Shown: positions 1,942-39,357 of the stretch, one piece after another
Layout of the letters: the number at the start of each line of letters is the position of its first letter
Numbering within the stretch: the stretch's first letter is position 1
Program-made: the position numbers and the translations under genes
Source: Eutreptiella sp. 'Long Island Sound 2002'
Taxonomy: Eukaryota > Protista > Euglenida
Assembly: GCA_964036045.1 (NCBI GenBank)
Contig: OZ038378.1
Coordinates: 180,916,001 to 180,980,000, forward strand
Length of the DNA stretch: 64,000 nt
Direction of reading: 5' to 3'
The notes under the pieces: model-generated
Told to the model about the DNA's origin: nothing
The model's database searches: none
The model's input: only the letters and a program-made list of their open reading frames with translations

Positions 1942-3682
1942 CTGTGGAGAGCGTTGCAGAGGGTGGGCGGGGGCAAGAGTGCCGTGCGGGGCTGCAGAGG
2001 GAGGCGGCGGATCAGAGGGAGCGCGGGTGTTGGCCAAGGGGTGAGGAGAGTTCCACGGCGTCGGGCAGAAGGGGATCTGCCTTGGCGATGCTTGCCAGTG
2101 AACGGTTGTACCCCCAATGACCAGGAATATTTCAGTGTTCACAGGGTCGTTGGTAGACCGTGTTAACGGCTAAAAAAAACCGGCGTTTGACGAGGGGGCG
2201 ATCGTTGCGCAAAGCAGTCATTGCGCCCACGGCAACAAGAACCCGGATGTGTGTGACAGTCATGGGAGGCATGACAACATTTGCCATGACTCAGAATCAT
2301 ATCTAATCCAACAGAAGTGGGTTGCAGTGTACAGCTGTACACGTCTACATGTTGCTATGAGCAGAAACAAGTTTTCACAGGCAGGAACCAGCCCCTCCTT
2401 CCCACTACGACCAGCTGACAAACATGTCTTCTTACCTTCTCGGCCACCAAAAACTGCGGCTGCAAAAAAGTGGCCAGAGGGCGTGTGTATATGGCCCTTG
2501 TAAGTGCAATCCCACCCCAAAATCAAGGAAGTCTGTGAGACCCTGTGAGAGTGCATTGCGACCCTTCATTGTCCCATATCAGCACGTCTGGAGGAGTTCC
2601 TGGTGCTGGCTCCGCAAAACGTCCCTAGACTCGGGTGAAGAGCCCGACATCATGGCTGGAACCCGATCATTGGTACGGACACAATGGTAGAAAAGCATGG
2701 GCACCAGGCCCCAGAACAAAGACATGGTAAATCCCGGCGGAGGGACAGCAAATTTTATGTGTCATTTGGCCATTAGTGACACAACAACGTGCAGAAAGAG
2801 GCAGAATGAAGAGGGAGTTGCATGGACCCCACCACAATACACCCCACAACACCGCGCCCTTGGGCCTGAAATGGGGCAAAAAGCAGTGCCCACATGAACC
2901 GACAAACAAAAACTTTGCACAGTGCGCTCACGCTGTGAGCGCTCTCGCACAAATATTCTCGTAGGTAAGAAACATATAACACTACATTTGGAGCCCTTAC
3001 TGACTTTAGTCGTTTCCGATGGTGTTGAAAAAGGCTTGAAAATGGGGCTCCTCGCTGTCTCTAGTGTTTTCAGTGGTGTTGGCAAAGGCTTGAAAATAGG
3101 GCGTTGCCGGAAGCCCTTGAAACCAATTGCTGCCTGGAATCCACCACGCACCGCATGCACGCCACCCGGAGGCACGCCTTCACGCAACGTACCCGAGTGC
3201 GTTAAACTGGCAGTACCATCTGGCACACGCACTCCACATTTGTGCCGAACCACCCCCGCCGCCAGAACCCCCAGAACCCCCTGGTAGAATCACGTGATGC
3301 AACAGACATGACACTGGGGGGGGCGGGGGTCCCGGTCAGGCGATTGCTCAATGACCCGGGGAGGGGGGGGGGGTCGTTTGATGCCCTGGCCAGCCCCGGC
3401 TGACCCACCCACCCACACCAGAAAAATAACTCATCAAAGCGACCGGAAATTTGAACCGGAAATTTGAGGCCGATTTTCGGTCCACAAACTGTTTTCTGGC
3501 CTCTGACCCCCCCCCCTCCTCCCGGGGGTAGGGTGCCCGTCACACTAAGCAATAGCATGGTCCCGGCCCCGATTTCAGCCCACCCCCCCACCCCCCCCAC
3601 ACACACACATAGGCCATGCGGACGGTGACGGAGGGGGTTGCAGAGAGCGCGGTCAGGGCCGCACGCGGGGACAGAGCGTTAC

Positions 3683-4508
3683 CGTCGGCGCACGACAAGA
3701 GCCATTTCTTCGTTTCGGAGTACTTGACGCTGTTCACGCACTTGGTATGGCCCCGCAGCCGCCGGGCGCTGGCCGTCCCCCCGGCGTCGATGGTCCACAG
3801 GTGGATTTCGCTCTGCAGCGTCCCGCTGGCAAACTGGGCCCTGTCCCAAGGGCAGGGGCACAGGCACATGACCGCCTGGTAGTACCCGAACCGGAACTCC
3901 TGCACCGCCTTCCACTCGGCCTCGGGGTCCAACAGCCGCATGCAGCCGTCACTGCCGGCGACCAGCAGCCAGTACCGCCGGTCGGCCTCGCCCTCGTGCG
4001 CACCGGTCCCGGTGTCCAACGGGGCCTGGATGACCGCCATCGCCCGAATGCGGCCCTTCATGATGCGGGTCGTGCTGGTGCAGGCCATGCGCTGACCCAG
4101 GTCCAGCACCGAGATCCGGCCGCTGTCGTCCCCGCAGATGACCTCGTTGGAGAAGGGGGAGAACAGCGCCGCCCGGATGGGGAAGTCCGTGGGCGTGACG
4201 GACCCGAGCATCTTGTCCGTGACGTAGTTGTACAGGCACACGGTCCCGTCGTAGCAGGAGCACAGGAGCGTGGGCTGTAAGTCGTGGAAGGCGACGCACT
4301 TGATGCGGTCGGTGCTGACCACGCGGTGCGGCTGCAGCTCAACCCGCGGCGCCTGCAGGATGGTCTGCCAGCATTGCCCGTTGTGTGCGGACACGGCCCT
4401 CCACGCGCTGCAGACCCTCTCGACGGTGGTCACGACCTCATGCGCCCCCAGGAAGGTGAAAATGGTGGACAAGACGTCCGGGGGAAGCGGAAAGCATCCC
4501 CAGTCCAT
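3683..4508 (-). CDS. F-box/WD40/TM protein, exon 1 (F-box + beta'-COP-like WD40 repeats)
   Basis: F-box motif PLPPDVLSTIFTFL..VERVCSAW. STDRIKCVAFHDLQPTLLCSCYDGTVCLYNY resembles the first beta'-COP WD repeat. Donor GAC G|GTAACG at 3682. High GC3. Confidence 0.85.
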
Positions 4509-8181: not shown

Positions 8182-9067
8182 GGAGGGAGGGGGGGAGAGA
8201 GAGAGAGAGGGGATGGTCACAAACAACCGCCCAGCGGTGGGGTGCCTCCCATTATGCAACGCAAAATCATGTAAAACCATGCAAAATTGTGTACGTGAAA
8301 CAAAGCAAAGAAGAGGCACAGCAATTTATGACACCCTCCTCCGATCCATCACTACAACTGTCACCCTCCTCCACAGTCGGCCTCTTTTTGTCTGATGTGT
8401 CTGGTTCCTCATCACTGTCACTATCATCAGACTCTCATCATCCTGTTTTTTTGGGGGGGTTCAGGCCGTGGCAAGCTGGCGAAGCCCACTCACAATGCAT
8501 TGGAGAAATTTCTCGGAATCAAGGATCAGAGCTGTCCAATGCTACAATTGCCCCACAAAGCAAGGTGGTGGCGGACATAACATGTCGTGAGCACAATGAT
8601 GAAAAGGGCAAACAGCTGTGACAAAAGGGAACACACACAACAGCAAACAGAGTGCCAACCGTGGAACCAGCGTCAGATTCATGGTTGTATAATTGTGCAA
8701 ACTTATGCAAAATTATGCAAATTAAAGCCCAAAGCCCCAATATGCAAAAACTTTGTATGCAATTATGCAACAATATGCGTTTGCGTAATTCCCCACCTCT
8801 GGCTGGGGGCAGTTGGCATTTGGCAATTGTGCAAATGTGAATGCGTGAGAGCATGGCATAGGTGAATGCATTCACCTATGCAATGCTGTTGGAAGAGTGC
8901 CTCGAGTATTAGCCTCAAATAAGCATCCCTCTGTGCCTAAAGTGCAGGAGGGGTCTGTAAATCTTCGACTATGATCTCTCAGCAACGGTACCCTATTGCC
9001 AGCGCTCTCACCCCACCACATTTCAGACCATGAATTAGAGGGTGTGCACCCGCCAGTGTGGCATCAA

Positions 9068-9793
9068 TTATCTGTGCCAAATGCCAACTGCCGGTGGGAA
9101 ATTACGCAAATGAATTGCATAATTTTTCTTTGCATATGGAGGCTTTGGGCATTCAGGGGACGAGAGCAGATGAAGAAAAACTGCCACCCACCAGTGCCCC
9201 TGCTCGCCACAGACCAAAATAAACCAATCGAGGTCAAAGCAGTTTTCCTTCTGTGGCAAGCTCTTTTTCCGCCAAAGGGTAACAGGCCAGACCCTTCGCT
9301 GGAGGCCGAGTTTCCGATGGAGCAGCAAATTCATGAGTTGCACTCGAATTTCAATTAAATTATCTCCGATCCAACGATCACCCCCCAATTGTTCCGTTAT
9401 TTCACGGTTTGTCAACAAAATGCCTAGGACTCTGATGCCATCTACCCCAGATGCAGGGCCCTCGGCAGGAGATGGGGTGTCGTCGGCATCAATATATTCC
9501 GGGTGAGGAGGTGAGGAGGTTGAAGTTGGCTCAGGGCTAATGGGTCCGTGCGGCGCAGTGGTGCCGGGGTTAGCAGCTTGCATGGGCTCCGGAGATTCCA
9601 CGTCGGCCATTGATGGCCACCAAACGTGTTCACGTGGCCAAAGAGCAGGGTCATCCCCTAAATCTTCCCCCCGTGGTGCAACGAGGCCGTTCAATTGAGC
9701 CTCGTACAGCCGTCGGCTATCCCCACAAAGGATGTCTTTCGCCCCATTGATTCTTTGAATGACACTGATGTCAAACCTCTGAGCCCACAGCAC
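9068..9793 (-). pseudogene. Ulp1/C48 SUMO-protease-like fragment, probably transposon-derived
   Basis: WIGDNLIEIRVQLM resembles the C48 WLNDEVINFY motif. FDLDWFILVCGEQGHWWVAVF resembles the His-Trp strand motif. The ORF stops before the Asp/Cys region. Confidence 0.55.
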
Positions 9794-10878
9794 CAGTTTC
9801 CGATACCGTTTTTTAACGACGGCAAGTTTGCATCCCCCGACTGCACCACCGGCAGCACCTCCAGACGGTACCCGGGAAGCAATCCCGATGGGTCAACGAT
9901 ATTGAGGATTCGATCAGTCGTCAGCCCCGGATAATACAAAGTGTTGGGAGTCCCGTAGAGCTCGATCCACAAATCGTAAACCTCCTGCGTCACGACACTT
10001 GTGGCACTGCGGTCGTTGTCCTTGAAGAACTGCGCCACTTGCCCCGTCTTTGCAATGTACTCGTCGAACACACTGTTATTGAGGACGCGCCCCCCGCCGT
10101 ACTTCTCCCACGTTGGCAGGAAGGCACCCACCGCCTGCTGCTCGTCAAACCCCTGGACGAACTGGACAAAAGGGACCAGATCCTGGAACGGCAGGGGAAG
10201 GAGTGTCAAGTCATTCGTGCCCCCCGTCAGCGCCCAGACGAGCGAGGCGACGGCCTGCTGCAGCGACCGGAACGTGCTGAGTTCTCCGGTGTCGGGGCTC
10301 GAGGAGTACCGCTTGGCGACTTGGTTGGGGTTCGTCTTTGTGAGCCAGGCCGCCAGGCTGTGCGCGTCGACATAGCTCTGGTAGAGGCGGTAGCCTGCGC
10401 CTCCGGGCAGCTGCTCGATGGTGACGATGTGGTCCACACTGCCGGTGTGCTGCAGGTGGAAGATCACTAAGTCGTCGGGATACTGGGTGCGGTACGTGGA
10501 AAACAGCTGCTGGATTCCGCTCCCCACATCGGCTCCGCCAGTCACGGCGGTGTACCTTGCAGCTTGCCCGTTGAAGAAATTGCCTGCATTGCGGTATTCT
10601 GTGTACTGACTGCCGAGGCCTTCGAAAACTTCTGTGACCCAGGAAAGCGTGAGACCACAGGCCCAGGCAGTACCAGTGGCAGGTTGCGCCAGCATGGCAC
10701 TCACAAAGGCATGGGAGGTCGCGGAGGATTCTGCCGCGGCTTTCTTCTGGTTGATTCTGCTGCCTAGTTGGCGGTCATACACCGACAGCTCACGGATGAC
10801 GTCGAGGCACTCTTTCTTCGCTGAGGCGGGTGCCATGCTCGTTAAAACAAGCAGCACGAACAGCAGGGTCACCAGCAT
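9691..10878 (-). CDS. Secreted papain-fold Cys-His-Gln protein, Cif/CHBP-like deamidase candidate (~395 aa, intronless)
   Basis: Signal peptide MLVTLLFVLLVLTSMAPASA|KK from ATG 10878 (alternative ATG 10914). ACGLT (Cys codon 10657-10659), DHIVTIE (His 10429-10431), YRLYQSY..HSLAAWL (Gln 10378-10380). Strong GC3 bias. The last ~45 codons are uncertain. Confidence 0.8.
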   Translation of the reverse strand: MLVTLLFVLLVLTSMAPASAKKECLDVIRELSVYDRQLGSRINQKKAAAESSATSHAFVSAMLAQPATGTAWACGLTLSWVTEVFEGLGSQYTEYRNAGNFFNGQAARYTAVTGGADVGSGIQQLFSTYRTQYPDDLVIFHLQHTGSVDHIVTIEQLPGGAGYRLYQSYVDAHSLAAWLTKTNPNQVAKRYSSSPDTGELSTFRSLQQAVASLVWALTGGTNDLTLLPLPFQDLVPFVQFVQGFDEQQAVGAFLPTWEKYGGGRVLNNSVFDEYIAKTGQVAQFFKDNDRSATSVVTQEVYDLWIELYGTPNTLYYPGLTTDRILNIVDPSGLLPGYRLEVLPVVQSGDANLPSLKNGIGNWCCGLRGLTSVSFKESMGRKTSFVGIADGCTRLN

Positions 10879-11551
10879 GCTGGACAGTACACTGCAGATG
10901 GCAAATCTGTACATGTGGTGGGTGTTTGTTTGCGTGTGTGTGCGCGCGTGTGTGTATTTGTGTGTGCCACTGGCCAATGGCCCCACCAGGTTGCTCTGGT
11001 TCTCGCCTGCGGCAGTCCTTGACGGGCGGAAAGTTGCCCCAAGGGACCATGAAGCAACGGATACTCAGCTACCGAACGCCCCTGTGTCACAGGCGACCAG
11101 TCACAGCTCGCAATTGTTCTGCTGCACTGCAGCACTCCCAAACCAGTACTGAATGTTGCCTTGAGTTCGCCCATGGGCTATCGAATGTCTCTTAGGCTGG
11201 TTTGGGTCAGCTCGCTCACCTTCCTGGAGCCCGGCATGGTCAAAAACCTGGGGTGGGCCGTGACAGCACACGTGCCCGCGTTTCAGCGATGACAACACAC
11301 AATTTGTGCAAATTGCCCCAAAGGGGTGGGGGGTTGTATGAGCCCCCCCCCCCCTGGACCCCAGGGGGTGGGGGGGTGCAACAGGGGCTCCTCTGTCACG
11401 AGCCTTGCTTTTGGTCGTTTTTTGGCAAAAATATTGTGTAGTTTCTTTCATCAAAAGCGGGTGGGGACAAACGACCACTTTTGTTACTCCCCTGAATGCG
11501 CTGATTTCAAAAATGCCATTTGCATTCCTTCTTCTTCTGCCTTCTACCTAG

Positions 11552-11870
11552 CAAACAAACAACGTGGCTGAACTGCAAGCAGCACTGCGTGCCCTACAAA
11601 TCTGCAATTACCCTAAAATTGCCCTATGCACCCACTCAGAATACGTCTACTTGGGAGCTACAGGCGCGGCTCGCCACTGGAGAGCCCCTGGATGGCATGG
11701 CTCCCCGAGCCCTGTGCCCACACCTTTTCTCTGGGAACAACTCCCGCACGAATTGGACCGCCGTGGACGGGTGGTGGAATGCGTCAAAGTACCTTCCCAC
11801 AGTGGGGTGCGAGGGAATGAGGAGGCTGACAAGCTGGCTGAGGAGGTTAGGCTATCTAGCCCGCTCTGCC
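11552..11870 (+). mobile_element. Retroelement-type RNase HI domain relic
   Basis: QTNNVAELQAAL...IALCTHSEYV...LWEQL...VKVPSHSGVRGNEEADKLA. The catalytic Asp of TDS reads His, and there is no intact upstream RT. Confidence 0.8.
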
Positions 11871-23497: not shown

Positions 23498-24542
23498 TCA
23501 GTGCACTAAAGTGCTCATGTCTCCCACTGCATTGCCACCAAGATTGAGGGTAAGATTATGAAGTGATGGGGCATCCTTCAGTGCTGCAAGTGCCTGTGTC
23601 CCAATATCTCCCACTACATTACAACACAGATTGAGGGTAAAAGTATGCAGTGTCGGGGCATCCTTCAGCGCTGCCAGCGCCTGTGCCCCCATGTCTCCCA
23701 CTGCATTCCTCTGGAGATCCAGGGTAAGCGTATGTAGAGAGGGGGCATCCTTCAGTGATGCCAGCGCCTGTGCCCCCGCAGTTCGCACGGAATTCCCATG
23801 CAGATTGAGAGTGAGTGTATGCAGGAAGGGTGCGTCCTTCAGCGCTGCAAGTGCCTGTGCACCCATGTCCCCCACTACATTCCCCTGAAGATCGAGGATG
23901 AAAGTCTGCAGACAGGGGGTATCCTTAAGTGTTGCAAGGGCCCGTGCCCCAGGGGTTCGCAAACAATTGCCCCCAAGATTGAGACTGAGTGTATGTAGGA
24001 AGGGGGCACCCTTCAGTGCTGCAAGTGCCTGTGCACCTATGTCTTCCATGGCAGTGCCCTGAAGGTTCAGCGTTAGTACATGCAGTGAGGGGGCATCCTG
24101 CAGTGCATGCCAGGACTCAAATGCCAGGAGCCCCATCTGCCCCACTGGGCTGCCTTGGAGATTGAGAGTCAGTGTATGCAGTAAGGGTGTGTGCCTCAGT
24201 GCCTGTGCCAGTGCGTATACCTCTGCCCGACACATGTACATGTGATGGTATGTTGTGTGTGCTGCATCCAGCTTCAGCGTGTGCAGATTTGGTGCCGCTT
24301 TCAGCACAGCAGCTAAATCGGTCGGGTACGGGGAGTTTTGCACCGTCAGTTGCAGAGATCGAATGTTCTCCCAGGAAACAGCCGCGTGCTTCAGACTTTG
24401 GTCAGCCTTGCACATCAACGTGACGTGACTCCACTCAAATGTTTCCCTGAGCCTTCGACAGACTTGACCCAATGATACTGTACTTGCGAAGTCCGCAATG
24501 ACATCCCACACTTCCTCAGGTAATTGAAATACTGCCTGGGAC
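23498..24542 (-). CDS. F-box / 28-residue RI-like leucine-rich-repeat protein (main exon; 5' exon not found, 3' end frameshifted)
   Basis: F-box QLPEEVWDVIADF..LGQVCRRL. Tandem repeats of LHTLTLNLxGNxVGDxGAQALAALKDAPx. Acceptor ctctctgcag|G at 24543. A further repeat fragment (VGEIGVQALAALKDVP) lies out of frame after the stop. Confidence 0.8.
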
Positions 24543-24899
24543 CTGCAGAGAGGCAGGACGGGGTGTGGGCAGTGGCTCTTGAGAATATTGGAGGCTGGGT
24601 TTTGGCTGTTTCAGAGCACCAAACCCTTACAATGCAATTCCACAGGACGGGCGGAGTGCAAAGCTCGACCTCCTCTGGGGTGTTAGATCCAGTGCCCCTG
24701 AGTACTCAGCTGAAGAGGCAGGGCCACACGCCTTGCCACGTCCAGCCAAGGCCAGCCATGTGATTGCATGGGAACGAAACAAAGGGAACCGGAAATACAG
24801 TGACGGGGGCCCTTAGGGCACATGCAACTACTGGGCATCCAGTGCCATGCACAAAAGGTCACTGTCCGGACAGATTCACCCGTTTTCTTGTGTTTAGTC

Positions 24900-25200
24900 C
24901 CGTATTTTTGTTTTGTGTTGCATTGGGAGAGGATGGAGTCCTTGTGAAGTGCTGTATCGTGTAAATAACTCGGGTACCCAGTGGCGGACAGTACTTCTCC
25001 TTGTAGTACCAAAGGCAATGCATTGCTGCCCACTTTCCACCCCCTTGTGATCGAGCCGCCCATGACAAATACCCCCTTCCACAACACCTCGCAATACTCG
25101 TGGCCCATTCTGTGGATCACGGGCCTCAGAGGGTCACCTGTTTGATTCCCAGGCTGGGCCCTGTGGCCAAATCCAGAGCCATAAAGAGCATGAAGCGCCC
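24900..25200 (-). mobile_element. Possible Penelope-like RT relic
   Basis: GDPLRPVIHRMGHEYCEVL resembles the Penelope RT P.RPIV..G.P.Y motif. Single-motif evidence only. Confidence 0.25.
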
Positions 25201-25587
25201 CAAAGAAATGGTTTGAGAGTCCCATAACCCCCTAAGAAGAGTTGTAGGTGATGGCGTGCTACGGAAACGTACTAGGCAATGTACAAAGCCAATGCATTCA
25301 CCCTGGCCTCGTCATTTCCTGCTCAATTTTGCATGGGATATGGACCTTTGCTGTTTCTCTGACAATTATGCGCAGGAGGGAATAATTGCCCTGTCCACAC
25401 ACTGCACAACCTTGCGAGTTGCCACTTCCGGCAACTTTACCTAGAAAATGCCCCCAAATGGATGTATCAAAGACAGGGAGGGTATCTCTACCAAAACACA
25501 TGCACAGGCAGCCTTCTGTACAATGCGTGCACAGCATTTCCAATGCACACTTTCTGAGGAAAATCTTGGATTGGTGGTAAACTTGTA

Positions 25588-26921
25588 CCCTCTACCCCCC
25601 TTGTAAAAGAAACACCTCCGCGCGACGGTTCCCTCACACCCCCGAGGGAACGTACCCCAAGTGACGGTTCCCTCGCCCCCCCGCTTACTATGTAAGGGAC
25701 GCACGACACACAGCAAGACAGGCAAATAACGGGGCATATGAACCACTGAACGACCTGAAAAAGGCCTGTTGACATGCATGCTTAGGTCCACTGAGACACA
25801 TGCTCTATGTGCCACTTTTTTTGGCATGAGTATTCGACTTTGAAGAGCTACACATGCTCAACAGGGGTCACAGGAATGGGCTCTCCGGCTGCAGGCTTGG
25901 CTGCCACCATAGCAGCAGGTTTGGCTGTAGCTCCACTGAGACACACGCTCCGTGTGCCACTTTTTCTGGCAGGAGCTTTCGACTTTGAAGAGCTGCACAT
26001 GCTCAACAGGGACCACCTGAAATACTAATACACCTGAAAATTGCTGTTTGCGAGAACCCCGCTTCACCAACGCCTCAAGTTGTGGGCGGATCTTCTGCCA
26101 ATCGCTCAAGGGCTTAGCCTTGGCGGCTGCTCGTTGGCTGAGTTGGGTGTCAGCGTATTGAAGGCACGCTAATTTTTCAGTGGCCGTACGGGTGCGCCTC
26201 AATGGCTGGGCCAACCGCAAGGCCTTACACCATCGCTTGGCAGGCTTTTTCAAGCACTCAACCAACAGCGCATCGTCGGCGGCGGTGGGGGACTGTGGCC
26301 GTTTTGGGGGGCTAGATTCACTAGTGAGCTGCACAGCATCGGACTCATCCACAGGAGGGGGTGCTAGGAGGGGGTGCTGGGGGGCGTAAAAAAGTGTCCA
26401 ACTTCAACTGCACCTTCTTCCCGGTAGGGCGCCTTCTCTCCGATCGGTTGGCAGTTGAGGGAGGTGTGACGGGGCGTGGGGGTGAGGGGAGAGACATCCG
26501 TGCTATGGGGGCACAGTTATGCGTCACCAAGAGCCAGACCGCTCATATGTGATAGACCGATACTCAGCACCACGCTCTGAAGGGCCCAGAATCTTTGCAA
26601 GCACAACAGTGCCTTCGGAACGCTTGAAGCTGACAACCGTACCAGGTGTGTACGTGTCAATATGCTCAACATCCATGGCTGAAATTGCAAAAAACTGAGA
26701 GGTCTGCATGATACAGGGTCCAATATAGTGCCTTGGATGCAAGAAAGATCAAGAACACAGCAATGCACAAATGCTACTACCTTGTCCAACCAACAAACAT
26801 GCGGCAGAAGCTCAATATCGAACTTTTCTATAAATTTGGGAAAGTGAAGGTGACAGTTCCCTCGCCCCCCCCCCCCCCGCTTACTATACAAGGGCATTTC
26901 TTGTTCAAGGGGGGGAGAGGG
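25588..26921 (-). mobile_element. Non-autonomous TA-flanked TIR element carrying a disrupted non-transposase ORF
   Basis: 25-bp TIR ccctctaccccccttgtaaaagaaa / tttcttgttcaagggggggagaggg (3 mismatches) with TA on both sides. Subterminal direct repeat gtgac.gttccctcgccccc..gcttactat. Internal ~82-bp direct repeat (25789 and 25933). ORF pieces 26524-26742, 26345-26530 and 25858-26352. Confidence 0.7.
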
Positions 26922-27693
26922 TAGATTTACAAATGCGCACACCGCCATGGAGAAAGCAACCGGACACTAAATTTCAAATCATCCACTGATACATCTATCT
27001 GAACTTTGTCACTGGTAAGAGATGCCATATGAACCTTCACCTGCAGTTGGGCTTCATGAACAAGAATTCTGTTGCCTTTGGCACGACACCTCGAAGGGGG
27101 TTGGGAGCACATAAGGACATGGAACATTGTGGGGGCTCAGCTGTATGCCGCACAAATACGCCCCAAAAATGCCAAAAATTGACCACAACGAATGGAGAGG
27201 GTTGCATTGCATCTGCGCAAAATATGTATTGTGTATTCGCATTTCGCATTTCGCATTTACCCTATGCAGTTGAATACCGAAAGCTGAGACCCCGACCCAA
27301 TGACTACAGGGGGGCTTCTGGCAGTTCACACAGCGCCCAATCGTGGCTTGACTACACAGAACTCACCTCAAAACCACCAACCACTCAAAATCCTGCATGC
27401 ACGGGCCAAAATCTCAAAAAAAAAAAAGAAAAGAAAAAGAAAAAGAAAAAGAAAGAAAGGTGATATGAAGCAGTACACCATGCTCTCCACGGTGTCTTAG
27501 AACAGAACCCCTGCTATATTGCGGTCCCATCTCCCCTGTCGTATCAGTACCCGCCTGCCCGCAGAGCATGAATCAAAATGGCACCCAAACACCCCAATAA
27601 ACGTACACCCATGGCATCAATACATTACCATTCAAAAAGACAAGGAAATGGATGCACCAAAATGCACCTCTGGTGGCCGATGCTCCCGTCGCT

Positions 27694-28057
27694 CTAGCCT
27701 TTCTGTTTGTCTAGGGGGTCCAAAACGGTAGAACTTGCGACAGCCCACCGTGCACTCCTCCCATTGGATGCATTGGGACCACACTTATCACGTGCATACC
27801 TGTTGGGCCCTTCGGCTTCTGCTCTGTGCCGTTCCTCGTCTGCAATGTGCACACCATCCAGCACTCGAAGTGTTGTGATGCGTGCAATCACATAGAGTCG
27901 CTGTTGTGCATACTCTGCGGCAGAGCAATGGTTGAAGTCATTCAAACAGGCCTCGTTGTTGAGCATGCTCAGCCACCTCAGCTGTGGACAGCTCCTCTTG
28001 ACCATGTAGACAAAGGAAACCAAATCTGAAATCTTGTTGTTGTTCACAGACAAATAC
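27694..28057 (-). CDS. LRMDA/U2A'-type LRR protein, exon 2
   Basis: Acceptor ccttcaccag|G TAT, giving a phase-2 join (..PSLR-YLSVNNNKI). LSMLNNEAC...RLYVIARITTLRVLDGVHIADEER is an LRR-cap typical of LRMDA (C10orf11)/U2A' proteins. Confidence 0.85.
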
Positions 28058-30914
28058 CTGGTGAAGGATGACAGGGAAGAATGCCCAACGGCACGATGTA
28101 TCCTTGTGAACCATCTTGCACGACAATATGTCTGAGTATCGGACGAAATGTGACAGAGTGCCGGGCAGACGTCCGTCAGTTTGGAAAACTATTGCACTGT
28201 ACACTACTGTGGAGTCCTGTTTCCCTAAATGCCGTGTGAAACTTGCCCATATGTGCACATCAATGCTGAAATTGTGCACAGAACCTACATGTATCATTTC
28301 GTTGTGGCTCTGTGATCTCTTGTGCTTGGCACGGCCCTGGGCGCCGTTCAATCGCCCCATGCTGTCCTAAGGGCCACCATCACTGTCCTCCCGGTGCACT
28401 TTGTTTCCTTTGCATGCAAGTGCATGCCTGGCACAGACTGGAAGTGGCAAGGCATGTAAGCTTGCAATACCAGCTGAGAACTGGTTGCACCACCCTGAAC
28501 CCCAAGAGACCGCTTCCTGGAAGCCAATCCCCTTCAGCCATTCATAGGGACAACTCTACTGGACTGGAATCGGATACCGTAGACACGGCCTGTGGCTCCT
28601 GCAGTGCTCCAAAAGCTCTCTTACATTGCACCATCAGCCCACAACGGTCTTTTGTGATGCGGAAGCATTGAGAATGGCCACCGATGCGGCAGGGGGCTTA
28701 GGGGTCAACATGGGATACCCTGCGAGAATGCCTGCGAACGGTTCCACGTATGGCACCCGGTGCACATCTACTTGAGATTGATAGATATGCAGCAACACTT
28801 TTTTTTTTTTGCAATCCCCGACTGTCAGGCACCCGGCTTATGGACAGAGCTGGAAAGGCCATGGCTGGTGAAACTGCTGGGGTCTGTCCAGCCGCCTACA
28901 ATTCCGTCGACACTCCCGCCGACGAAGCAAAAAAATATTCGAGATCAATGCTGCTGCATGCTCCTTGGCCCTGTGACATGCTTGCCTCTCCGCATGAGGC
29001 CCGAATAGGCCTTCGGTCTGCTTCTAGGTTCGTTTTGTACAGCAACTCTCTTGGCAAAGAGGAAGTAGAACCAAGGAACCAGATATAATACCTGCACCCC
29101 TCCAGTGTCCTGGGAACAGACACCATCATTGGACGCGGCTGGCACTTCAGGGGCTTTCCGGCCCAAAACAAATGTGCACGCTTACGCACGTTTGGACAGG
29201 GAGATGGCGCACGCTTACGCACACTTACCACCCGCACTGCGCACCCTTGTGCCCGCTTAACCCTGGCCTGTGCGCACACTTCGAACCACAGGTCTGGCCC
29301 CCTGTCTGTCCTGAGGTATGCAACAAAATGATGCTTGTGAAGGGGGGCTGTTTGGGAACGTTTCCAATTGTACTGAGATTAAGCCTGGTGCACCGGGCCA
29401 CAACTTCTTGCTGGCACCTCTACCAGAACCAATCAGCGTACCAAAGAAATGGGCGCAGAGGTTCATGGAGGGTCCTGATGAGCCTGGCGCACAGCCACAT
29501 ACCGAGGGTGCTATGCTATCTGCGAAACCTGCCTGCCACACGACATTGCCAGGAAACAGAATACTACCAGCAAATGCGGGGAGGATGCACAAAGAATTGC
29601 TAACTGGCGCTTGCTTTGAGAATGGCCACTTTGCATCCTGACCCGAAGGCTGCATAATGCCTGAGGCCAGACTGTGGGGGCTCTTACATCACTTTGGTGT
29701 ACGCTGTAAAGGAAATAAGCAGGCGAACAACAAAGATGTTGTTCTGTTGACACCATCACTCTCTACAAAGGAGAGACTATGGCCTTGGCTTTGCAAAGTT
29801 TGGTAAGGAATCCCACCCTTCTACTGTGGTCAAAGAGGAGGGATGTTGGAGAAGCAGAGCCCCAATGCTATCCTTTCCCCTTGGATCAGGCAATAGGTAT
29901 CAGTGTATCTGAATCCTTTACTATGCTATGGCTGTGTGCAAGCGGATTAGTGTGTATATGTCGTAGCACTACATGGTTGTCCTGTACACATTGAAAAAAG
30001 GGGGTGCTTTTTCGCCGCAGGTGTGCGGTGTGTCGCACAACTTTGTCCCATCCCCCACCATAGCACAACGTCGTCCCCACCATCACATGTTGTTGTCTGA
30101 TGCCCAACATCGTAGGGTGCCCTTTCCCATGACATGGTCAGTTGGTTGCTTCATTCTGGATAGTGATGGTCATTGTCAGTCTTCTGGAAAATGTTGGCAC
30201 TGACGGATCATGCGACAAAGCGGGGGCTTCCGGGTTTCAATTTTTTGGGGGAGGGGGGTAGAGCCCCAGGCCAACTCCCCCAAGGGCTCCATTGACCGCC
30301 ACCCCTGAATGCCCCTCAGGTTGGCCCAAATGTGACCTCGACCCCTGCCTTTGGTGCCAGATTTCATAGTGACTGAGTAATGGCCCTGGCTACAAAAGCC
30401 CGGCCCAAACCCCGGCCCCCACTTCTTAGAAAACGTGCCTTTTGGAAAGGCATAGCTGGAGGCTTTTAGGAGAGCAGTGGCGTTGCGAATTCGTAGCAAC
30501 CCACCTCCTTGGTAGGGGGAGGCACATGTGGCTTCTGTCCCAGTGACAACAAGGCACGTGAAGCTGTGAGCCATGTGCTCCCTAAACCCCGACCCCAACT
30601 CAGCTTTCCTGGTTTTTTCGTGTTTACACCCCACACGCAACAGTCATGGATGACCCAATGCATCCTCATCACTGCCAAGTGATTCTCCATGCTCTTTGCT
30701 GTAGACCAGTAGCTTCTGGATCGCAGGGGCACAGTGGACACCCTATTGCCAAGGACAAGCTCGGTTTCCTGCCTTGCAGTTCGAAGTCAGGAACCGTTGA
30801 GGAGCAATTCAGCTGCATGACCAGGCTCTTGTAACCCTGGTGCCGCGAATGTCTTCTGCCCAGACGCCAGCAACCAGCTTTGCCTGATACAGGCCTGCCA
30901 GCAAAAGGCCACAC

Positions 30915-31165
30915 CTTAAACTCGGCAAGCACGGAATTCTACAGCTACTTTGCAACACGTTGTTGTCCACAATCAAGGTCTCCAGTGCTGCGCAATTCTT
31001 CAGCGGGCTGAGGGATGTAAGTTGGTTCTGGGAGGCATCAAGCGATCTCAGCTGCCGTGCCGCAGCTTGAAACTGGGGGGGGAAAGTGGCCCAGTCACGG
31101 TAGGCCACCGATAGACGCTGGAATCCATCAGGTTCAGGCGTCCAGGAGTTCCAAGAATACCTCAT
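30915..31165 (-). CDS. LRMDA/U2A'-type LRR protein, exon 1 (spliced product 204 aa)
   Basis: ttttcgttttcag 4 nt before the ATG. LRSLDASQNQLTSLSPLKNCAALETLIVDNN. Donor AG|GTGTGG at 30914. Confidence 0.85.
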
Positions 31166-32044
31166 CCGTCTGAAAACGAAAACAGTGGTGGGAGAGATGA
31201 CAGAAACACCAATCCCAATGCAATTTACTTGTGTTTGGTGATGACCTACAGACCTATGCGGCAGGTGCAAACGCACACATAGCGCATGTAGGTGGGTAAG
31301 GGACGCACTGTTCGTGCGGTGAATGGCTATAAGTGACATTTGGGCCTGTTGAATTGACCACAAAAGTACGTGTGACTGGGCACCTGCTGCCTGTGAGCAC
31401 CAAATGCGCCAGCTTTTGGCAACTGCCCCTGAAATTGGCCCCCTTGTTGAACCTCCACAGAAAGCTGCCAAGCTGAAAGACTCATCACCATGTGGAGAAG
31501 ACCCAACAATGCATGCTGTTCCAATCATTAGTGCACATATTGCACATACATGTGAAGAAAGTACAAGAGCAATCAATATACAATGGACAAGAAATTGGCC
31601 CTCCAATTAAACAACCATATGGGCAACCATTTCTCTAGGCACCAAAATCATTTCGGCATCAATGCATTGGTTCACACACCCCAGCCCCCCACCCCTTTTT
31701 GAGAATCCTCCCAAATGGCTGGATGTAGACCGCTAATTCAAATTGACCCCCCGTGTTCTGTCTCATATAATCGCGGTGCATCACATGACCAATGCGCCCA
31801 TAGTTGCCTCCAGTTCCGGACTTCACCATTCAATGCTGTTGTTTGATCAGTGGTTACCTCAAACTTTGTAGTCCAGTCCTTAACGCGCCATTCTCAGTCA
31901 GCTCATCCCCCTCCCCAAGCCCCTTAACCTCCCTCATTCCTCCACCATTGACCACTTCCCTTTTCCTTGCATGCCACTTGTGCCATCACTCAATCATGTA
32001 CCCCCCCCCACTCCTCATAAAAGCTGCGCAAAAGTCCCAAATTA

Positions 32045-33150
32045 TTACGGTCCCTATGTCTACTGTAGCTTGGACAAGGCCGTAGCTTCCACGCAACACA
32101 TACAACTACCAAAACACATGTGAGTGAGCGCATGGTATGAGTGCACCTTAACCTCCACCCACGTTCCCAAAGGCATGCAAATACAAGAAAGTGTTTGAAA
32201 CATGAAATTTCAGGTTCACACCCATGTTCTCATAAACAATGAGGCATGAGAAACCAACAAATGTTCGGCTTGAAAACCCTTCTTGCGATCATAAACCATG
32301 TGGAACAACTGCACATGGGCGGGAAGAAAATTGCTCTGCGGGGGGGGTGGGTGACACGGAAGCCCATTTTCCCAACCCCCCCCCCTCCCTCCTTGGCCGC
32401 CGTGACGGGAGGGGGGGGTTCAGGGCGGGGGCGCCCGACCTGCCGTGCCGGGAGGGGGGGGGGGGGTCAACCCAACATCTATGGCTCAAAATAATACCCA
32501 CATCGCGCTGATCATTTTGACTACTCAAATGTGGGGGGGGGAATTATTGGTGGAAAAAACTTTTTCGGGCCAAATTTTGTGTTCCTGTGCCTTTGGCGCC
32601 AACATCCGTTCTTACACAAAACAAAGGGCCCGACACGGAACCCCATTTCTCCAAACCCCCCCCCCCTCCTTCGGCGGGCGTCCATGTCAGCCCCCCCCCC
32701 CCCCCCCGCAGAGCAATTTTCAGGTTGCCATGCCCACCACTTGAAGATGCCTTTGAAGATGCCTTTGCCCGAGGTTTATGGGCTGGTTTGGGCTCAGGCA
32801 ACTTCAAGGTCTTGGGGATAAAATTGCCTTACATGTAGTCTCTTGTAAAGTACAATTTCCCATAAAATACATTGACCATTCCCCACACACCTCGGGCAGC
32901 CTTAGCCCAAACAACTTCAGTGGGAGCATCGTCGGAGTCACTAGAATCATCACCTGAGGAAGCGGACTCAGAAATGCAACCATCCTCATCAGTGTCCGCC
33001 CCAAATTCAGAATCAGAATCACATGTTGAATCAGAATCAGAATTAGCAAAATAGTTCAAATCCTCAAGCTCCAAAAACTTCATCCCTTCAGGGAAGTAAG
33101 CTGCAAGGCCCTCATATCATCCTTGGTGATTGCATTAAATGCCTCCAAGG
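32045..33150 (-). mobile_element. Second degenerate copy of the pogo-like element (transposase C-terminus + 3' end)
   Basis: AYFPEGMKFLELEDLNYF matches AYFPGGLKLSQFEDVGFF of 17932-19338. Shares the acidic tail, the cctttgcc.gaggttt..ggctggttt stretch and the terminal gtagcttggacaag motif. Confidence 0.65.
32326..32721. mobile_element. ~400-bp MITE nested in the pogo relic
   Basis: Perfect inverted gaaaattgctctgcgggggg / ccccccgcagagcaattttc. Internal direct repeat gacacggaa.cccatt..cc.aaccccc. Confidence 0.7.
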
Positions 33151-35720
33151 GCGTAACTTTTACACGGGGGGGGGGGGGGATGTGCAGAGTAGAGGCAGTG
33201 ACTACTGCCCGCTAGCACATGAGTGACATGACCAACAGACCAACAACAGATGGTCACCCAATATTGTACCCTAATGGCCTCTGTATAACCAATCAAACAA
33301 AAAAAAGCAACATGATAGGCGGAAGGTGCACAAAACACCCCAATAGCTGTGAGGTGTTCCAAAACACCTCCAGCACATCCCACCTCCTTGCATGCCATCA
33401 CCAATGGCATCCAAAGCGTCCAAGGAGCCAACCGTCAATAGTCGGCGCTCTAGATCACTCTTCTTGCCTTGAAGTGGTTTTGGGCCCCAACTTTCGTCTT
33501 CAAGTTTGCCAATTGGCTCAGGAAGATGCCTAAGAGTGACTAACGGTTGTTTCTCACCAAGGAGGTTGGCAAGCCTCCACATCATTTACTTTATGTGCAA
33601 GGCGCTATGCTCCTTGATTCACTGTCAAACCAAATCTCAAGCATATCTCCCTGTACAACGGAACATTTATACTGTGGGGGTTGAACATTGATAACCAAAT
33701 AGACTTGCTCGTATAGACACGGGCCGCCATTGACACCAAACAACGTACACAGCAAAGTTCCACACAAGGAAGGCTGGTGTATGCTGAAAATGTCATAGGA
33801 CATTACTACCATGGGAGAAAAGAGAGAGAGCTACAACTACACCGCCGCACCTACATAGGAATGCCCCCCTCCCATTCTACGAGTATTGCACCAATCTGCT
33901 CCCATAGATCCACATTGGAGAGCAAGCCTACAGGCCACACCCATCCTTGTGACTTCCATTTGTGCACCTTTTCTATTGGGTGCTGGGGTCATGCATGCCG
34001 CCGTCCATAGACGGTGGGGAAATGTGCTCCTGGGACTCTTGGGTGCACACACTGGTTGGTGTCTTTGGAAACAAATTGTTTACATTCCTTATTTCAAACC
34101 ATTGGGGAAAATTACTTTTATTGGGAGTGGGACAGGTGTCCCTCTACTTTCTTAAGGTGGGGTGGGGCAAATCATATTGAGACACCATCAACGTCCTTGC
34201 ATCCCTTACCTTACCACAGCAAGGGCATGAAGCTGTTCATGTACGCCCCCACCACCGCCTGCATCTGGATGGGCTTGGGTTTTGGGAGGACCCGGAGACG
34301 GCAGGGTTCATGTTAGCAACTGCTCTTTTCTGTCCCAGCTCTGGGGCGACCAAGACGGCAGGGGTTATGTGGGGTAAGTGCATAAATGCCTGCCATCAAT
34401 CCATAACCAGAATGGAGTATTGGGATCGAGCTGGCGGCGAAGGGAAACAGTGCAGAAGGCATACTGTGCACACTGCACATTTTGTATTCTACACTTGGCA
34501 CATTGTGCGGTCAGCCAACTGCACACACAGCACACACTGCACACTCTGTGCAATGCACACGGCGCACTTTGCACAGAACAGAAGGAGTTTGGGGGTGTTG
34601 GCCTTCCTCCTCGGAAAACATACTTGCAGTGCAGGGCAGCAGCCACAGGAGATACATATACACAGACAGGTTAGCTGCCATGTCATATAACGTGTCATCT
34701 ACGTCAGACCCTGAAGAGAAACCTGCTGCTACTGATGATGAACTTGAAGATGACATTCATTTATCTGCAAGCAACTCATAATTGCCTGGAATGTTTTCCT
34801 CGCCAAAGCTACCATTCTCATGGAATTGCTTTTTCCTCAATAGTGCCGGAAAGTTTGATCATGCCAAGCAATGACAAGGGCTTCTAAATTGCTCTTCCAA
34901 GGTGTCTCTGTGGCTGGCCAACATACCCACAGTGACTTGTGCACCGTGTGTGCACAATGCAGGCGCTCCACCAAGGTTCAATGGAGGTTTAGAGGTCAGA
35001 GGTAATTCTATGTGGATCAGTGCAAACCCCTCCTCTTAAACGACCATCAGACACGAATCTTGTGCTTAGACACACCATAGCGTACGCACATGACCAACAA
35101 AGGCCTGATCACAGACATTGCACCCACCCGAGTCTGAGAATAAGTTAGGGGGCTAGGCCTGACAACTCCCGGCTGCTCAAGGGACGTACATGTCATGGTG
35201 GTGGTGGTGGGGGGGGGGGGGGGGGGTTGCGCGGCGAATGTCAGGGGGTCACCAACCCCTGTGCCTCAATGCCCTCGCCGGTATCTGAATGCCCAATCCT
35301 GTGTAGCTCCCCCGTTCCAACGCAATCCCTGCCGCCCTGTCCCTTAGACAGGTGTATGCTCTGTGCACCCAGACGGGGCGGGACGGGTGCACACATCGAT
35401 TGTCAAATCCCCTGAGTGCTCTCGTGTGTCCATCCATGTGGTTGGCCTCTTCCTTCCCACCGTTTGGTCTCCCAGGAATGTGCTCTATGGCTGGAGGGAC
35501 ATGAGGGCAGATTGGCATGGGGCCTGGAGACCAACACGTCCACCAACTTTGCGCGCCTCGGGGGGGGGGGGGGGGTCAGTCAGCCGTTCTGCTCCCTGGT
35601 CCTGGTTTTGAGGTTGAACCGTGGCTATTGGGCAGAGGTACCGATGGTGGATGGCAGCGCCGGTGCTGTGATGCTGAGCACTTACATCGGCAGACTGCAA
35701 GAACGCTACGGATGGGGGTC

Positions 35721-37107
35721 TCAGCCAAAGCTTAGCCTGCCGGAATCGAACGTCCTTGTATCCGTCGACGTCCTTGTGGAGGTGTACGAGGGGGTCCGTG
35801 TCAGCGTCGCGGTCGGCGAGGGCGTCATCGACGGCGTCTCCGTCCCCGACGGAGGCGGAGTGCCACTCGCAGTACCGCTCACGGTCCGATCCGGCGACGC
35901 CGTACCCGTCCGCGTCGCAGACCACGTAGCCGTCCGGGTGCCTGTGCGCGTCGCCGTCGGCGTCACCGTCGGCGTCACTGTGTCCGGCTGCTGGGCCGTC
36001 AGCCCAACCGGCACACACACGGCGGCGGCCACAACGCCCGTCACCACAGCCCCCGCCACCAGCGCCCCCGCCACGAGGCTCGTTCCCGTCGCCCCCGCCA
36101 CCGCGCCCCCCATCCCCGCCGACACCGCCGCGTCCGCGACGCGCGCGCCCACGAGCCCGAGGTCCCACGGACCGCCCTGGAACGGCGCCGCCAGCCCCGC
36201 CTCCGGCAGCTCCGGGAACGCGTCGAGGCCGGGCCCGGCGTCCCGCACCCCGAGAAGGTCCGACCCGCTCCGTCTCCCGAACCCTTCCAGCGCGCGGACG
36301 TCTGCCTCGGTGTAGAGCCGCAGGCCGCGGCCCCAGGACACCACATTGGTACCTCCGAGGCCGGGGTTGGGGGGCGGGAGGACCACATGGACGTCGGGGG
36401 ACAGTAGAGGTCGCGGTCGGGTGCCCGGGCCATCCCCGGACTCCAGTCCGTGGGGTCCCCCCTGTTGGCGCATCCCTGGGGGCTCGCAGGGGCCACCCCG
36501 GACCCTCGGGCGCCACGCACAATCTGCCGGGTCCTGCCCCACTGGGGGCTGAGACCCGGACCCACGGATCAGCAGCGCTGCGGCATGGCTGCTGCGACAC
36601 GCGCCTCCGGGAACGTCCGGGAACGGCGGCGCACGCGACACCGCCCAGCCGCAGCGGGCCGCGTTCCCGGCGCTGCAGAGCTCCGATGCGCGTCGCGGCC
36701 CCTGCTCCGGCACGTCCGGGGGGTCGGCACACCCCCAGTGCGTCCGAAGGCCGTACGGCAGCAAGGGGGGGCCGAGGCCGTACCAGGGGTCGGGGGTGGA
36801 CTTGCCCTGGGCGGCGGTGGCCTGCAGCTGAGGACCGGGGGGGGCTCCAGCAGCACGGGGCCCTACCCAGAGATCAGGGGTCTGTTTTAGGGCCTGTGGG
36901 TGGTCCTGCACGGGATGTGTCTGCGGTCGTGAGGGGGGCACATGGGGCACGGACAACGGGGCATAGCCGGTCGTCGCAGGCACGCGGGCGCGGGGGGCTG
37001 GTGGGTCGACGGGGCAACTGTGGCCGCTGCGGCGGTCGGCAAGATCCCGTCGTTCGCACGCGTCGATGTGGATCAGGACCTTGTTGGCGAGCTCCAAATA
37101 GTCATCC
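35721..37107 (-). CDS. EF-hand/ART gene, probable last exon: Pro-rich linker, TM helix, Thr/Ser-rich stalk
   Basis: Acceptor cacag|G GAT at 37108 matches the phase-2 donor at 38407. The frame stays open for 1387 nt. Hydrophobic SLVAGALVAGAVVTGVVAAAVCVPVGL is followed by TPTVTPTATRT repeats. Whether it is joined to the ART exons is inferred. Confidence 0.6.
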
Positions 37108-38407
37108 CTGTGCAATTGTGCGTTGGAAGCAATGGGTCGGCCGCGGCCCCAAAATCCCCCCCCCCCAAGTCTCTTAGCAATAGGCTGCATCTAAATCCAA
37201 ACAGAAATCTCAACCCGAATCATGTTTCTACTTCCAATGCGGCTGCACTTGCAGCATCCCCATTTGGCACATTCGATTCCACGCCTTCTGCCCGTCTTCA
37301 ATGCCATTGACCACACAACTACCCCCACCAGAAAACATGCCCTTTTTAGGGGTTGAAAGCCACAAATCTTTTGGAATTTCGCAATTTCGAATCGAAAAAG
37401 TCACCTCGAAGAAGATACAGGATCAAAAGGAGGTGCAGGCTGAGATTCGAAACCCTCTGTCCTGGTGCGCTTCCGAACCCGCATCTACGATCGGCGAAGA
37501 ACCTTGTTCTGGAAGCATGCACGCTCGATGCCATTGTCCCCTCACCTCATGACTGTGGAGTTGGTCACAATCGAAAAGGGGGGGCGGGGGTCCCGATGGG
37601 GATCAATGGTCAACAGCAAGGTCTGATCGACGTGCTGCGGGTTTGGGTAGTGGAAGGGGTAGTGTGCCGAGGCCCATACACCAACCGAATGCCGAAACTG
37701 TGCTGGCCCTGCATGTTCCCTGGTTTTGTGATTGCTGCCCGCCACGAGCTTCATGGAAATGGCACCTCAGCACTACAAACCAGAGCAAACATCAGAGGGA
37801 CACATGGGAAGGGACTGCCTAGTTCGGGCTGCAAGAAAAAAGCAGTAAAGCTTGATGAAGATTGGGAGGCAGAAAAATACAACTGATTAGTCACACTGTG
37901 TGCAGAAGTGGATGCACTGGCAAAGGTGGCCGTCGAGAACAATGACAAGGAAGTGATCCAGGCCCAACACTAGACTCAGCACACAAAATCACTGCTTTAA
38001 AGCCTCTGAGATCTAAATGGACGGTTGATTGTGCCTGGGACCCCTCCTCCAAAAGCTCCATTGACCAGACCCTCCAAAGCCCCCTTCCCCCCCAGGTCGC
38101 CTGCGGGTGTCCCAGACCCCAACTTTCAGAAAAAATGAAATGTTGTTTTTGGAATCAGGTCTGGCAAAACCATCAGTCGTCTGGGATTCAGACCATTTTG
38201 GACCAAAAAATGTTTCTTTGGCACCGGATTTCATAGTAACTGATTGATGATCCTGGTCAATAGGGTCCCTGAGCCCCCACCCTCCCTCGGGCTCCATCTC
38301 CCCACCCTCCCAGCCCCAGCCCCCGCAATCGAAAATCCGCTGTGCCCTGGGATCTGAAGTGCTTTGGGGGCTTGGCTGACAACCGGACGCTCGGCACACT
38401 GACGCAC

Positions 38408-38646
38408 CGAATAACAGGGGCATTGTGCCGGAAATCCCACAGATGGTACACACGGAAATCGTAAATCGCCTTGCCTTGGGCACCGTCCAGATCTTGGTGC
38501 TTTCCGGAGTGGCGACTCTGCACTTGGGGCACCAGGATGGCATTACTGGGCAACAGCACCTCTGATTCACTGGGGTACTGAGACACCCATTGCAGGTCTG
38601 CCCCATTAGTAAGCAGCCCAGTGTCATCCTGAAGGTCCTGCCCAGT
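38408..38646 (-). CDS. EF-hand/ART gene exon with the catalytic E-x-E loop
   Basis: Acceptor ctttccag|ACT (phase 0). GADLQWVSQYPSESEVLLP. Candidate donor CG|GTGCGT. Confidence 0.8.
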
Positions 38647-39357
38647 CTGGAAAGCGATAGAACGGGTTACCCGGAGGGTATATGGAGGGCATGGCACATG
38701 GGCGTACAGGGGGTATACGGAGGGCATACGGGGGCATACGGAAGGCAAAGAGAAGGCAAAGAGAAGGGCATCGGGGGGCATACGGATGGCTTCCAAAAAG
38801 CATGTGGCGGCCATGCGGAGAAAATACACAGGACACATCCAGAACCTCTACCCTTTGATTTTTTTTGTTCCGGCACACCAAATCAAAGTGATCTCTCGGG
38901 CAACAGCCCGGAGTAGCGCATATAATACAAATTTTAAAAATAAAGACATATAATTTTTTCCCCACGGACAATGTGGTGTGAAGTTTAAGCTCTTTCGGCC
39001 CGCACAGGTCATCCCTACGCGGGGCTTCAGGTCACAAAAAATTGCCCATGCACCCCAACAACCGACTGGCATTTCACTCACACGGCATTTGGATGTCTGA
39101 GTATCCCATTTGCTGCGTGTTGCGGCAGGTTGACTGGATATGCGACCTTTGGTGCATCCAATAATCAAGTGGGGGAAACCGTGCTTGCCTCTGAAGTAGC
39201 CCTTTCACAGGGAACAAGGGCAGGAAATGATGTGTGACCCGCAATCAATGGCGCAAGCAAATTGGGGTGCTGCTGTGGAGCTTGTCACATTGCACTTTGC
39301 AGTTTGGACACACATGCACACATACATCTACACACGCACACAGCCACACACATGCAC

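Follow-up and report, generated by a model that had tools for sequence, protein, structure and literature searches.

A predicted exported branch of the Cif/MavC fold encoded in the nuclear genome of the euglenid Eutreptiella

Cif, CHBP, MavC and MvcA are textbook cases of bacterial proteins that rewrite ubiquitin or NEDD8, and to our knowledge all of those described so far are injected as effectors by pathogens of animals, insects or amoebae. A gene on the reverse strand of a 64,000-nucleotide stretch of the euglenid Eutreptiella sp. 'Long Island Sound 2002' (GenBank assembly GCA_964036045.1, contig OZ038378.1, positions 180,916,001 to 180,980,000; hereafter the window) raises the question of whether a eukaryote encodes a relative of these enzymes and sends it out of the cell. 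A first-pass annotation, made from the letters of the window, had proposed a secreted protein with a Cif/CHBP/MavC-like Cys-His-Gln deamidase signature. The comparisons described here uphold that proposal in two respects: (i) the only strong matches of the predicted fold are to the papain-like enzymes Cif, CHBP, MavC and MvcA, and (ii) residues C86, H162 and Q179 of the protein are in register with the catalytic triad of Cif. We consider it very probable that the gene product belongs to the Cif superfamily. The family around it is a protist-and-myxobacterial branch of the Cif/MavC kind, predicted to be exported and absent from Pfam.

Predicted fold and candidate catalytic residues

For structure prediction, the leader and the repeat-derived tail of the protein were trimmed, and the region encoded by 9823-10818 (reverse strand) was modelled by AlphaFold with a 77-sequence family alignment. 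The model has a predicted local distance difference test score (pLDDT) of 94.2 and a predicted template modelling score (pTM) of 0.92; an earlier model from 8 sequences was poor (pLDDT 59), and the Foldseek matches obtained from it serve as a hint only. The modelled domain consists of N-terminal helices, a catalytic helix, a three-stranded sheet with the His and the Gln, a family-specific helical region of about 165 residues (model residues 150-316) and a final core strand (YRLEV).

The model was compared by VIA-align with 48,161 representative PDB chains and with 619 chains ranked by Foldseek. Exactly five of the representatives matched with Z of at least 8: MvcA (Z 12.1, 174 aligned residues, root-mean-square deviation (rmsd) 3.3 Å), CHBP (Z 11.1, 182 of 246 residues aligned, rmsd 3.6 Å), Yersinia Cif (Z 11.0, 186 aligned residues, rmsd 3.9 Å), Photorhabdus Cif (Z 10.6, 187 aligned residues, rmsd 3.9 Å) and E. 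coli Cif (Z 9.2, 145 of 182 residues aligned, rmsd 3.2 Å). The next best representative scored 4.4, and other papain-like enzymes followed. All 33 Foldseek-ranked chains with Z of at least 8 are Cif, CHBP, MavC or MvcA. The papain-like fold on which the first-pass annotation had staked its reading is what the model displays, specifically in its Cif-like form, with Z 9.2-12.2 to this group against 4.5 for the next best of the Foldseek-ranked chains. The remoter structural neighbors, at Z 3-4.4, are cysteine proteases, deubiquitinases and peptidoglycan amidases, among them AvrPphB (Z 4.1), CHAP endolysins and Tse1. Foldseek alone, suggested by the same annotation as a check on the AlphaFold model, also ranked the Cif-group proteins first, without reaching significance (E 0.2 on the good model). 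An ESM feature search returned weak Peptidase_C58 and Toxin_15 neighbors (0.81), and an ESM-atlas shape search gave only TM 0.30 (TM 0.30/0.52) to a ShET2 cluster.

Residues are numbered here from the ATG at 10914, so that C86, H162 and Q179 are the C74, H150 and Q167 of the first-pass annotation; its three motifs (ACGLT, DHIVTIE and YRLYQSY-x4-SLAAWL) are present at the residues it had named. In the AlphaFold model, C86 (model C54) is the first residue of helix 54-66, H162 is the first residue of strand 130-137, and Q179 is at the end of the neighboring strand 142-146. These predicted positions are consistent with the papain-like arrangement of a helix-start Cys, a strand-start His and a Gln on the adjacent strand. 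The structural alignment with E. coli Cif (3efy) begins at model residue 52 and chain residue 107, two residues upstream of the respective cysteines, and thus model C54 falls on Cif C109.

Conservation was scored over the 77-sequence family alignment. The three candidate residues, whose conservation the first-pass annotation had made a touchstone, are retained by most homologs: the Cys in 42/51 (82%, with Ser in 6 others), the His in 50/55 (91%) and the Gln in 45/51 (88%). Among the residues next to the triad, Gly is found at G87 in 38/51 homologs and Ser at S180 in 49/52, and the Trp of W190 is kept in 49/51. The window protein itself retains 30/30 of the positions that are conserved at 85% or more in the family.

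Neither the window protein nor the other family members gave a usable match to Pfam, NCBIfam, PHROGs or PDB sequences; one member had a weak CHAP match (E 0.03). For a direct comparison with Cif by hhalign, natural Cif proteins were retrieved with an unaltered intact piece of the E. coli E2348/69 cif pseudogene, neither joined nor repaired, as the search query only, and a profile was built from 21 full-length PF16374 members. The family and the Cif profile gave one collinear 168-column alignment (P 0.016), in which C86/H162/Q179/W190 are placed on Cif C109/H165/Q185/W201 and S180 on S186; the Gly after the Cys also has a Cif counterpart (G110). Single-sequence hhalign had already placed H162 on Cif H165. 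The score of the real alignment was 25.2, compared to 18.8 for the reversed alignment and 11.9-24.4 for 30 column permutations. This weak sequence signal counts because its register agrees with the independent structural result. In Cif, the triad is C109/H165/Q185, and G110, S186 and W201 are among the invariant residues (Jubelin et al., PMC2654923); all of them have counterparts in the window protein.

The likeness to Cif and CHBP (PF16374; 3efy, 3eir, 4f8c, 4fbj, 3gqj) includes a shared fold (Z 9.2-11.3, with 145-190 of about 182-250 residues aligned), a helix-start Cys, a strand-start His and a Gln on the strand after it, their order being the same and their spacing similar, and the common motifs C-G-x-T, Y-Q-S and x-W-[LM], whereas the identity in structural alignments is only 9-13%. 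The window family differs from Cif/CHBP in (i) the extra helical region of about 165 residues inserted between the Gln strand and the last strand, (ii) about 20 more residues from the Cys to the His, (iii) a conserved pair of terminal Cys residues, and (iv) its occurrence in eukaryotes and Myxococcota rather than in enteric and Burkholderia pathogens.

MavC and MvcA (Lpg2147/Lpg2148; 5tsc, 6k11, 7bxf) resemble the model most closely in structure (Z 10.5-12.2, 14-18% identity over 174-184 aligned residues); they have a Cif-like main domain and are similar to the window protein in total length. MavC has a Cif-like fold and acts as a transglutaminase as well as a deamidase, and both proteins are translocated by the Dot/Icm system and have ubiquitin, NEDD8 and UBE2N in the cytosol as their targets (PMC7156659). 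The UBE2N-binding insertion domain of MavC, residues 128-226, is located between the catalytic Cys and His (PMC7156659). No such domain is present in the window protein, in which the 76 residues from Cys to His contain two short helices and one strand, whereas the extra helices follow the Gln. YopT/AvrPphB (Peptidase_C58) and ShET2/EspL (Toxin_15) fall into the same broad papain-like superfamily and are weak neighbors; these Cys-His-Asp proteases match the model far below Cif and have no sequence match to the window protein.

Export signals, distribution and evolution of the family

The signal peptide and Sec secretion proposed earlier are supported by the leader of the window protein and by the export signals across the family. 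With either possible start, the first ATG or the ATG at 10878 (20-residue leader), the protein begins with a hydrophobic leader that ends with A-S-A before KKEC. Nearly all full-length family members have an N-terminal hydrophobic Sec-type leader, a lipoprotein box is found in 5/8 myxobacterial members, and a hydrophobic C-terminal tail resembling a glycosylphosphatidylinositol (GPI) or transmembrane (TM) anchor is found in about 10 protist members. These Sec-type leaders, lipoboxes and hydrophobic tails stand in place of a type III or type IV signal for delivery into the host cytosol, in contrast to the type III secretion signal of Cif/CHBP. The family profile begins within the leader, and the conserved region extends from KKEC onward. 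One residue of the conserved Cys pair (C36) directly follows the predicted cleavage site, the other is near the C-terminus of the family, and the two probably form a disulfide. Judged from the leaders, lipoboxes and tails, the family members are predicted to be extracytoplasmic, exported proteins, and thus the producer's own cytosolic ubiquitin or NEDD8 is an unlikely substrate.

A word search found 7 homologs, all 35-41% identical to the window protein: four named myxobacterial ones (Archangium, Corallococcus, Sorangium and a Myxococcaceae metagenome-assembled genome (MAG)) and three metagenomic ones. An exhaustive profile search extended the family to 141 cluster representatives (50% clustering) at E <=1e-3, of which 40 are below 1e-30. 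The named eukaryotic members come from Rhabdomonas costata (euglenid), Chroomonas (cryptophyte) and Mucochytrium quahogii (labyrinthulid), and one AT-rich member is encoded on a 50-kb contig beside ArfGAP, kinase and split alcohol-dehydrogenase genes, which is a eukaryotic context. A literature search found no published description of this exported protist and myxobacterial family.

When one genome of each prokaryotic species was scanned with patterns of the family, members were detected in Myxococcota only, namely in two Corallococcus species, a Cystobacter MAG, a Myxococcaceae MAG and two Myxococcus species. The scan patterns were built from an 8-sequence, mostly myxobacterial alignment, and hence the scan is biased to close myxobacterial relatives. 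Both Myxococcus copies are internally deleted or truncated, which suggests ongoing loss of the gene in Myxococcus. These short remnants are found in Myxococcus llanfairpwll... (L010:2728-3297) and Myxococcus eversor (L011:2821-3444); one of the two ends after the His region, and in the other the His strand and most of the helical region are lost through two internal deletions.

The neighborhoods of the myxobacterial homologs contain neither a conserved partner or immunity gene nor secretion-system genes, and the downstream ORFs are mutually unrelated, whereas MavC and MvcA have a dedicated inhibitor, Lpg2149. Two of the myxobacterial homologs are followed by small ORFs without a Pfam match (L002:9367-9753 and L003:9107-9682) that are unrelated to each other, and no Lpg2149-like partner is evident. 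Several long repeat proteins (P0094, P0100, P0113, P0114, P0143, P0145 and P0148) match the family profile at positions ~220-295 only, in 3-7 tandem stretches with a recurring motif resembling F-H-E-N-W-A-K-N; these matches are probably spurious or reflect a very local similarity to the helical region of the family.

In an unrooted tree inferred by maximum likelihood from 37 full-length rows, a tight myxobacterial clade (support 99/95) is the sister of the window protein (support 96/98), and both are nested in a poorly resolved radiation of protist-type sequences. The branch of the window protein is long (1.27). The horizontal acquisition that the first-pass annotation had considered is only half supported by the sister position: the unrooted tree gives no direction of transfer, and the approximately unbiased (AU) test does not reject a grouping with the homolog of the euglenid Rhabdomonas (p 0.27). 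Since the diversity of the protist sequences is deep, whereas the myxobacterial clade is shallow, patchy and partly decaying, a transfer from eukaryotes to myxobacteria is at least as likely as the reverse.

The locus, its repeats and its 3' end

The ORF listing of the window has a single open frame at the locus, 9691..10986 on the reverse strand, the first ATG of which gives a protein of 407 amino acids; the start chosen by the first-pass annotation lies 12 codons downstream (Table 1). The family profile is collinear with residues 13-360, with small insertions only, and thus no intron interrupts the gene, as had been stated earlier. The protist homolog on the 50-kb contig also has an uninterrupted ORF; hence the absence of introns may be characteristic of the family, or may result from ascertainment, instead of pointing to a recent acquisition. 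The codon bias noted earlier is likewise seen: in the homologous part of the gene, the GC content at third codon positions (GC3) is 0.75, compared to 0.43 at second positions (GC2). This GC3 is host-like, being within the range of the more GC3-rich ORFs of the window (0.54-0.90).

Logan contigs of four runs were mapped onto 8600-11600. The gene body is covered by a 1267-nt contig (9810-11076) with zero differences and a depth of 49.4, on a par with its unique flanks (45.5 and 49.2), and host high-copy repeats are located on both sides. The neighboring ORFs are eukaryotic and include an F-box and WD40 ORF at 3540-4508 and leucine-rich repeat (LRR) ORFs. Contigs of the locus come from several runs, among which are a second organism label and estuary metagenomes. 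The gene is nuclear and eukaryotic, occurs as a single copy, lacks introns and encodes ~330 mature residues.

Table 1. Features of the gene and its flanks (window positions; HMM, hidden Markov model)
Feature	Positions	Strand	Basis or remark
ORF from first ATG	9691-10914	-	sequence
Signal peptide, residues 1-32 from first ATG	10819..10914	-	sequence; predicted cleavage after A-S-A
Mature Cif/MavC-like domain (predicted), residues 33-364	9823..10818	-	AlphaFold, structural search, family HMM E 1e-94
C86 codon (TGT), candidate nucleophile, motif A-C-G-L-T	10657..10659	-	aligned to Cif catalytic Cys
H162 codon (CAC), motif D-H-I-V-T-I-E-Q	10429..10431	-	aligned to Cif H165 by single-sequence and profile hhalign
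Q179 codon (CAG), motif Y-R-L-Y-Q-S-Y, then S-L-A-A-W-L	10378..10380	-	aligned to Cif Q185
Repeat-derived C-terminal tail, codons 365-407 and stop	9691..9822	-	depth junction at 9823; family profile matches up to residue 360
672-bp internal fragment of a longer dispersed high-copy element	9152..9823	.	contig depth 1000-19000; sharp junctions at both ends
CA/CG-rich microsatellite	10916..10968	.	directly 5' of ATG 10914; sequence; treated as repeat in contig layout
Very-high-copy short dispersed repeat	11024..11225	.	depth ~24000-39000; many variant contigs, loose ends; ~110 bp upstream of start

The native 3' end of the gene was replaced by a repeat. Contigs of 1756 and 1924 nt from two other runs extend beyond 9152 and 9823 into unrelated sequence, and this, together with the contig depth, identifies 9152-9823 as an internal fragment of a dispersed high-copy element. 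The fragment has 10 differences from the contig copies in 672 nt (~1.5% divergence). The element is at least 1.9 kb long in other runs and is present in tens to hundreds of copies. An ORF of the repeat (9068-9793, reverse strand) has no Pfam or PHROG match, and the window contains no further copies of this repeat or of the short repeat at 11024-11225, which resembles a short interspersed nuclear element (SINE) or a miniature inverted-repeat transposable element (MITE).

The last residue encoded by unique DNA is 364. Thus, the extent of the ORF given by the first-pass annotation holds for the gene body up to this residue but not for the last 43 codons (nt 9694-9822), whose origin from the repeat it had not seen. 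The tail has a GC3 of 0.56, lacks the codon bias and has no family counterpart. A six-frame search of the window found no displaced last exon, no remnant of the lost C-terminus and no paralog. The cif gene of E. coli E2348/69 (L013:6762-7415) is annotated as a pseudogene without a C-terminus and is followed by a transposase fragment; its 3' end was clipped by a mobile element, much like that of the window gene.

Proposed chemistry and competing explanations

On balance, we favor the reading that the gene represents an exported Cif-fold enzyme whose triad, in register with that of Cif, would act by Cys-dependent glutamine chemistry on an extracellular or surface protein. Cys86 would form a thioester by attacking a gamma-glutamyl carboxamide or isopeptide in its protein substrate, and either water (deamidation) or a lysine amine (transglutamination) would then resolve it. 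As an exported enzyme, it would find this substrate among the extracellular or cell-surface proteins of the producer itself, its matrix, prey or a competitor. By analogy with Cif and MavC, we infer an extracellular reaction of the glutamine deamidase/transglutaminase type.

Several observations weigh against this reading, in its Cif assignment, its chemistry or its application to the window copy. PF16374 (CIF) has a match in 0/77 family members, even at E up to 10, and the sequence link to Cif taken alone is weak, given that one of the 30 permutations came as close to the real hhalign score as 24.4. The nucleophile Cys is missing in 9/51 homologs, and hence some family members may be non-catalytic. 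We know of no Cif relative that is extracellular, and the substrate is not fixed by the shared fold. The window copy lacks the near-invariant C-terminal Cys-x-x-Asn segment of the family (about 25 codons); because of this loss of the C-terminal Cys and the length of the branch, it may be inactive. None of the runs that contain the locus is RNA, all of them being DNA-like by their flat depth.

Two states are conceivable for the window copy: a variant that is tolerated, or a gene that was disabled recently. In the second case it would be a pseudogene, the frame of which runs on for 43 codons by chance after the repeat junction at residue 364, with the Cys-x-x-Asn segment lost without a remnant in the window and the tail free of codon bias; this case is compatible with the family assignment. 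Two further observations fit it: a collection of 5.8 billion proteins contains no transcript-derived identical protein, the cluster of the window protein having one member, and family remnants also occur in two Myxococcus species. On the other side, the 364 retained codons are uninterrupted, carry the host codon bias and preserve every highly conserved residue scored, and the last core beta-strand is kept. Since the repeat copy is only ~1.5% diverged, the truncation may be too recent to judge from these signs of constraint. We regard a disabled copy as a possibility to be taken seriously, though as the less likely case.

If the window gene encodes an active exported enzyme, its papain-like site could also catalyze another hydrolysis, as an exported protease or amidase that cleaves, for example, gamma-glutamyl bonds of bacterial cell-wall peptides in bacterivory or predation. 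The remote structural neighbors (AvrPphB, CHAP endolysins and Tse1), the Peptidase_C58 and Toxin_15 neighbors in the ESM feature search, the CHAP match of one member and the Cys-to-Ser swaps at the nucleophile would agree with such an activity. However, there is a large gap between the Cif group (Z 9-12) and the other papain-like folds (Z <=4.5), and the third residue of the triad is a Gln, as in Cif, rather than Asp, Asn or His. We hold this alternative to be improbable.

Even less probable, in our estimate, is a delivered Cif-like effector that is taken up by prey, host or competitor cells and deamidates Gln40 of NEDD8 or ubiquitin there. Its appeal is that ubiquitin and NEDD8 are the only known substrates of the enzymes that the window protein matches in fold and triad, and that myxobacteria, like many protists, are antagonists of other microbes. 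Against it, the family members have neither a translocation domain nor the context of an injection system, the myxobacterial neighborhoods are mutually unrelated, and the lipobox or GPI/TM-like anchoring of many members suits surface enzymes better than translocated toxins.

Myxobacterial contamination or mis-assembly, to which the myxobacterial origin of the closest named homologs might point, can be practically dismissed and was rejected, because the identity to these homologs is low, the GC content of the gene (0.60) is well below that of the high-GC myxobacterial genomes, the GC3 is host-like, and the gene, at a depth equal to that of its unique flanks, is located between two host high-copy repeats and among eukaryotic neighbors.

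For the favored reading, that of exported enzymes with the Cif fold, the following evolutionary scheme can be put forward tentatively, as a conjecture that we would rate below an even chance. The family would be the first recognized eukaryote-encoded branch of the Cif/MavC enzymes, consisting of ancient surface or secreted protein-glutamine deamidases/transglutaminases of protists that were exchanged with predatory myxobacteria, and the injected Cif/MavC effectors may be offshoots of it that were retargeted to ubiquitin and NEDD8. The locus in Eutreptiella also provides a dated example of a repeat that clipped the 3' end of a conserved gene. The family lacks a Pfam model, and defining it would bring an annotation to well over a hundred clusters of sequences. 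A branch so distant yet structurally unmistakable, with export in place of injection, would broaden both the chemistry and the biology attributed to the Cif fold, and its members in protists and myxobacteria offer a starting point for asking where the Cif/MavC effectors originated. The family suggests that the surfaces of protists and myxobacteria harbor an unexplored extracellular activity that modifies glutamine or is related to such chemistry.

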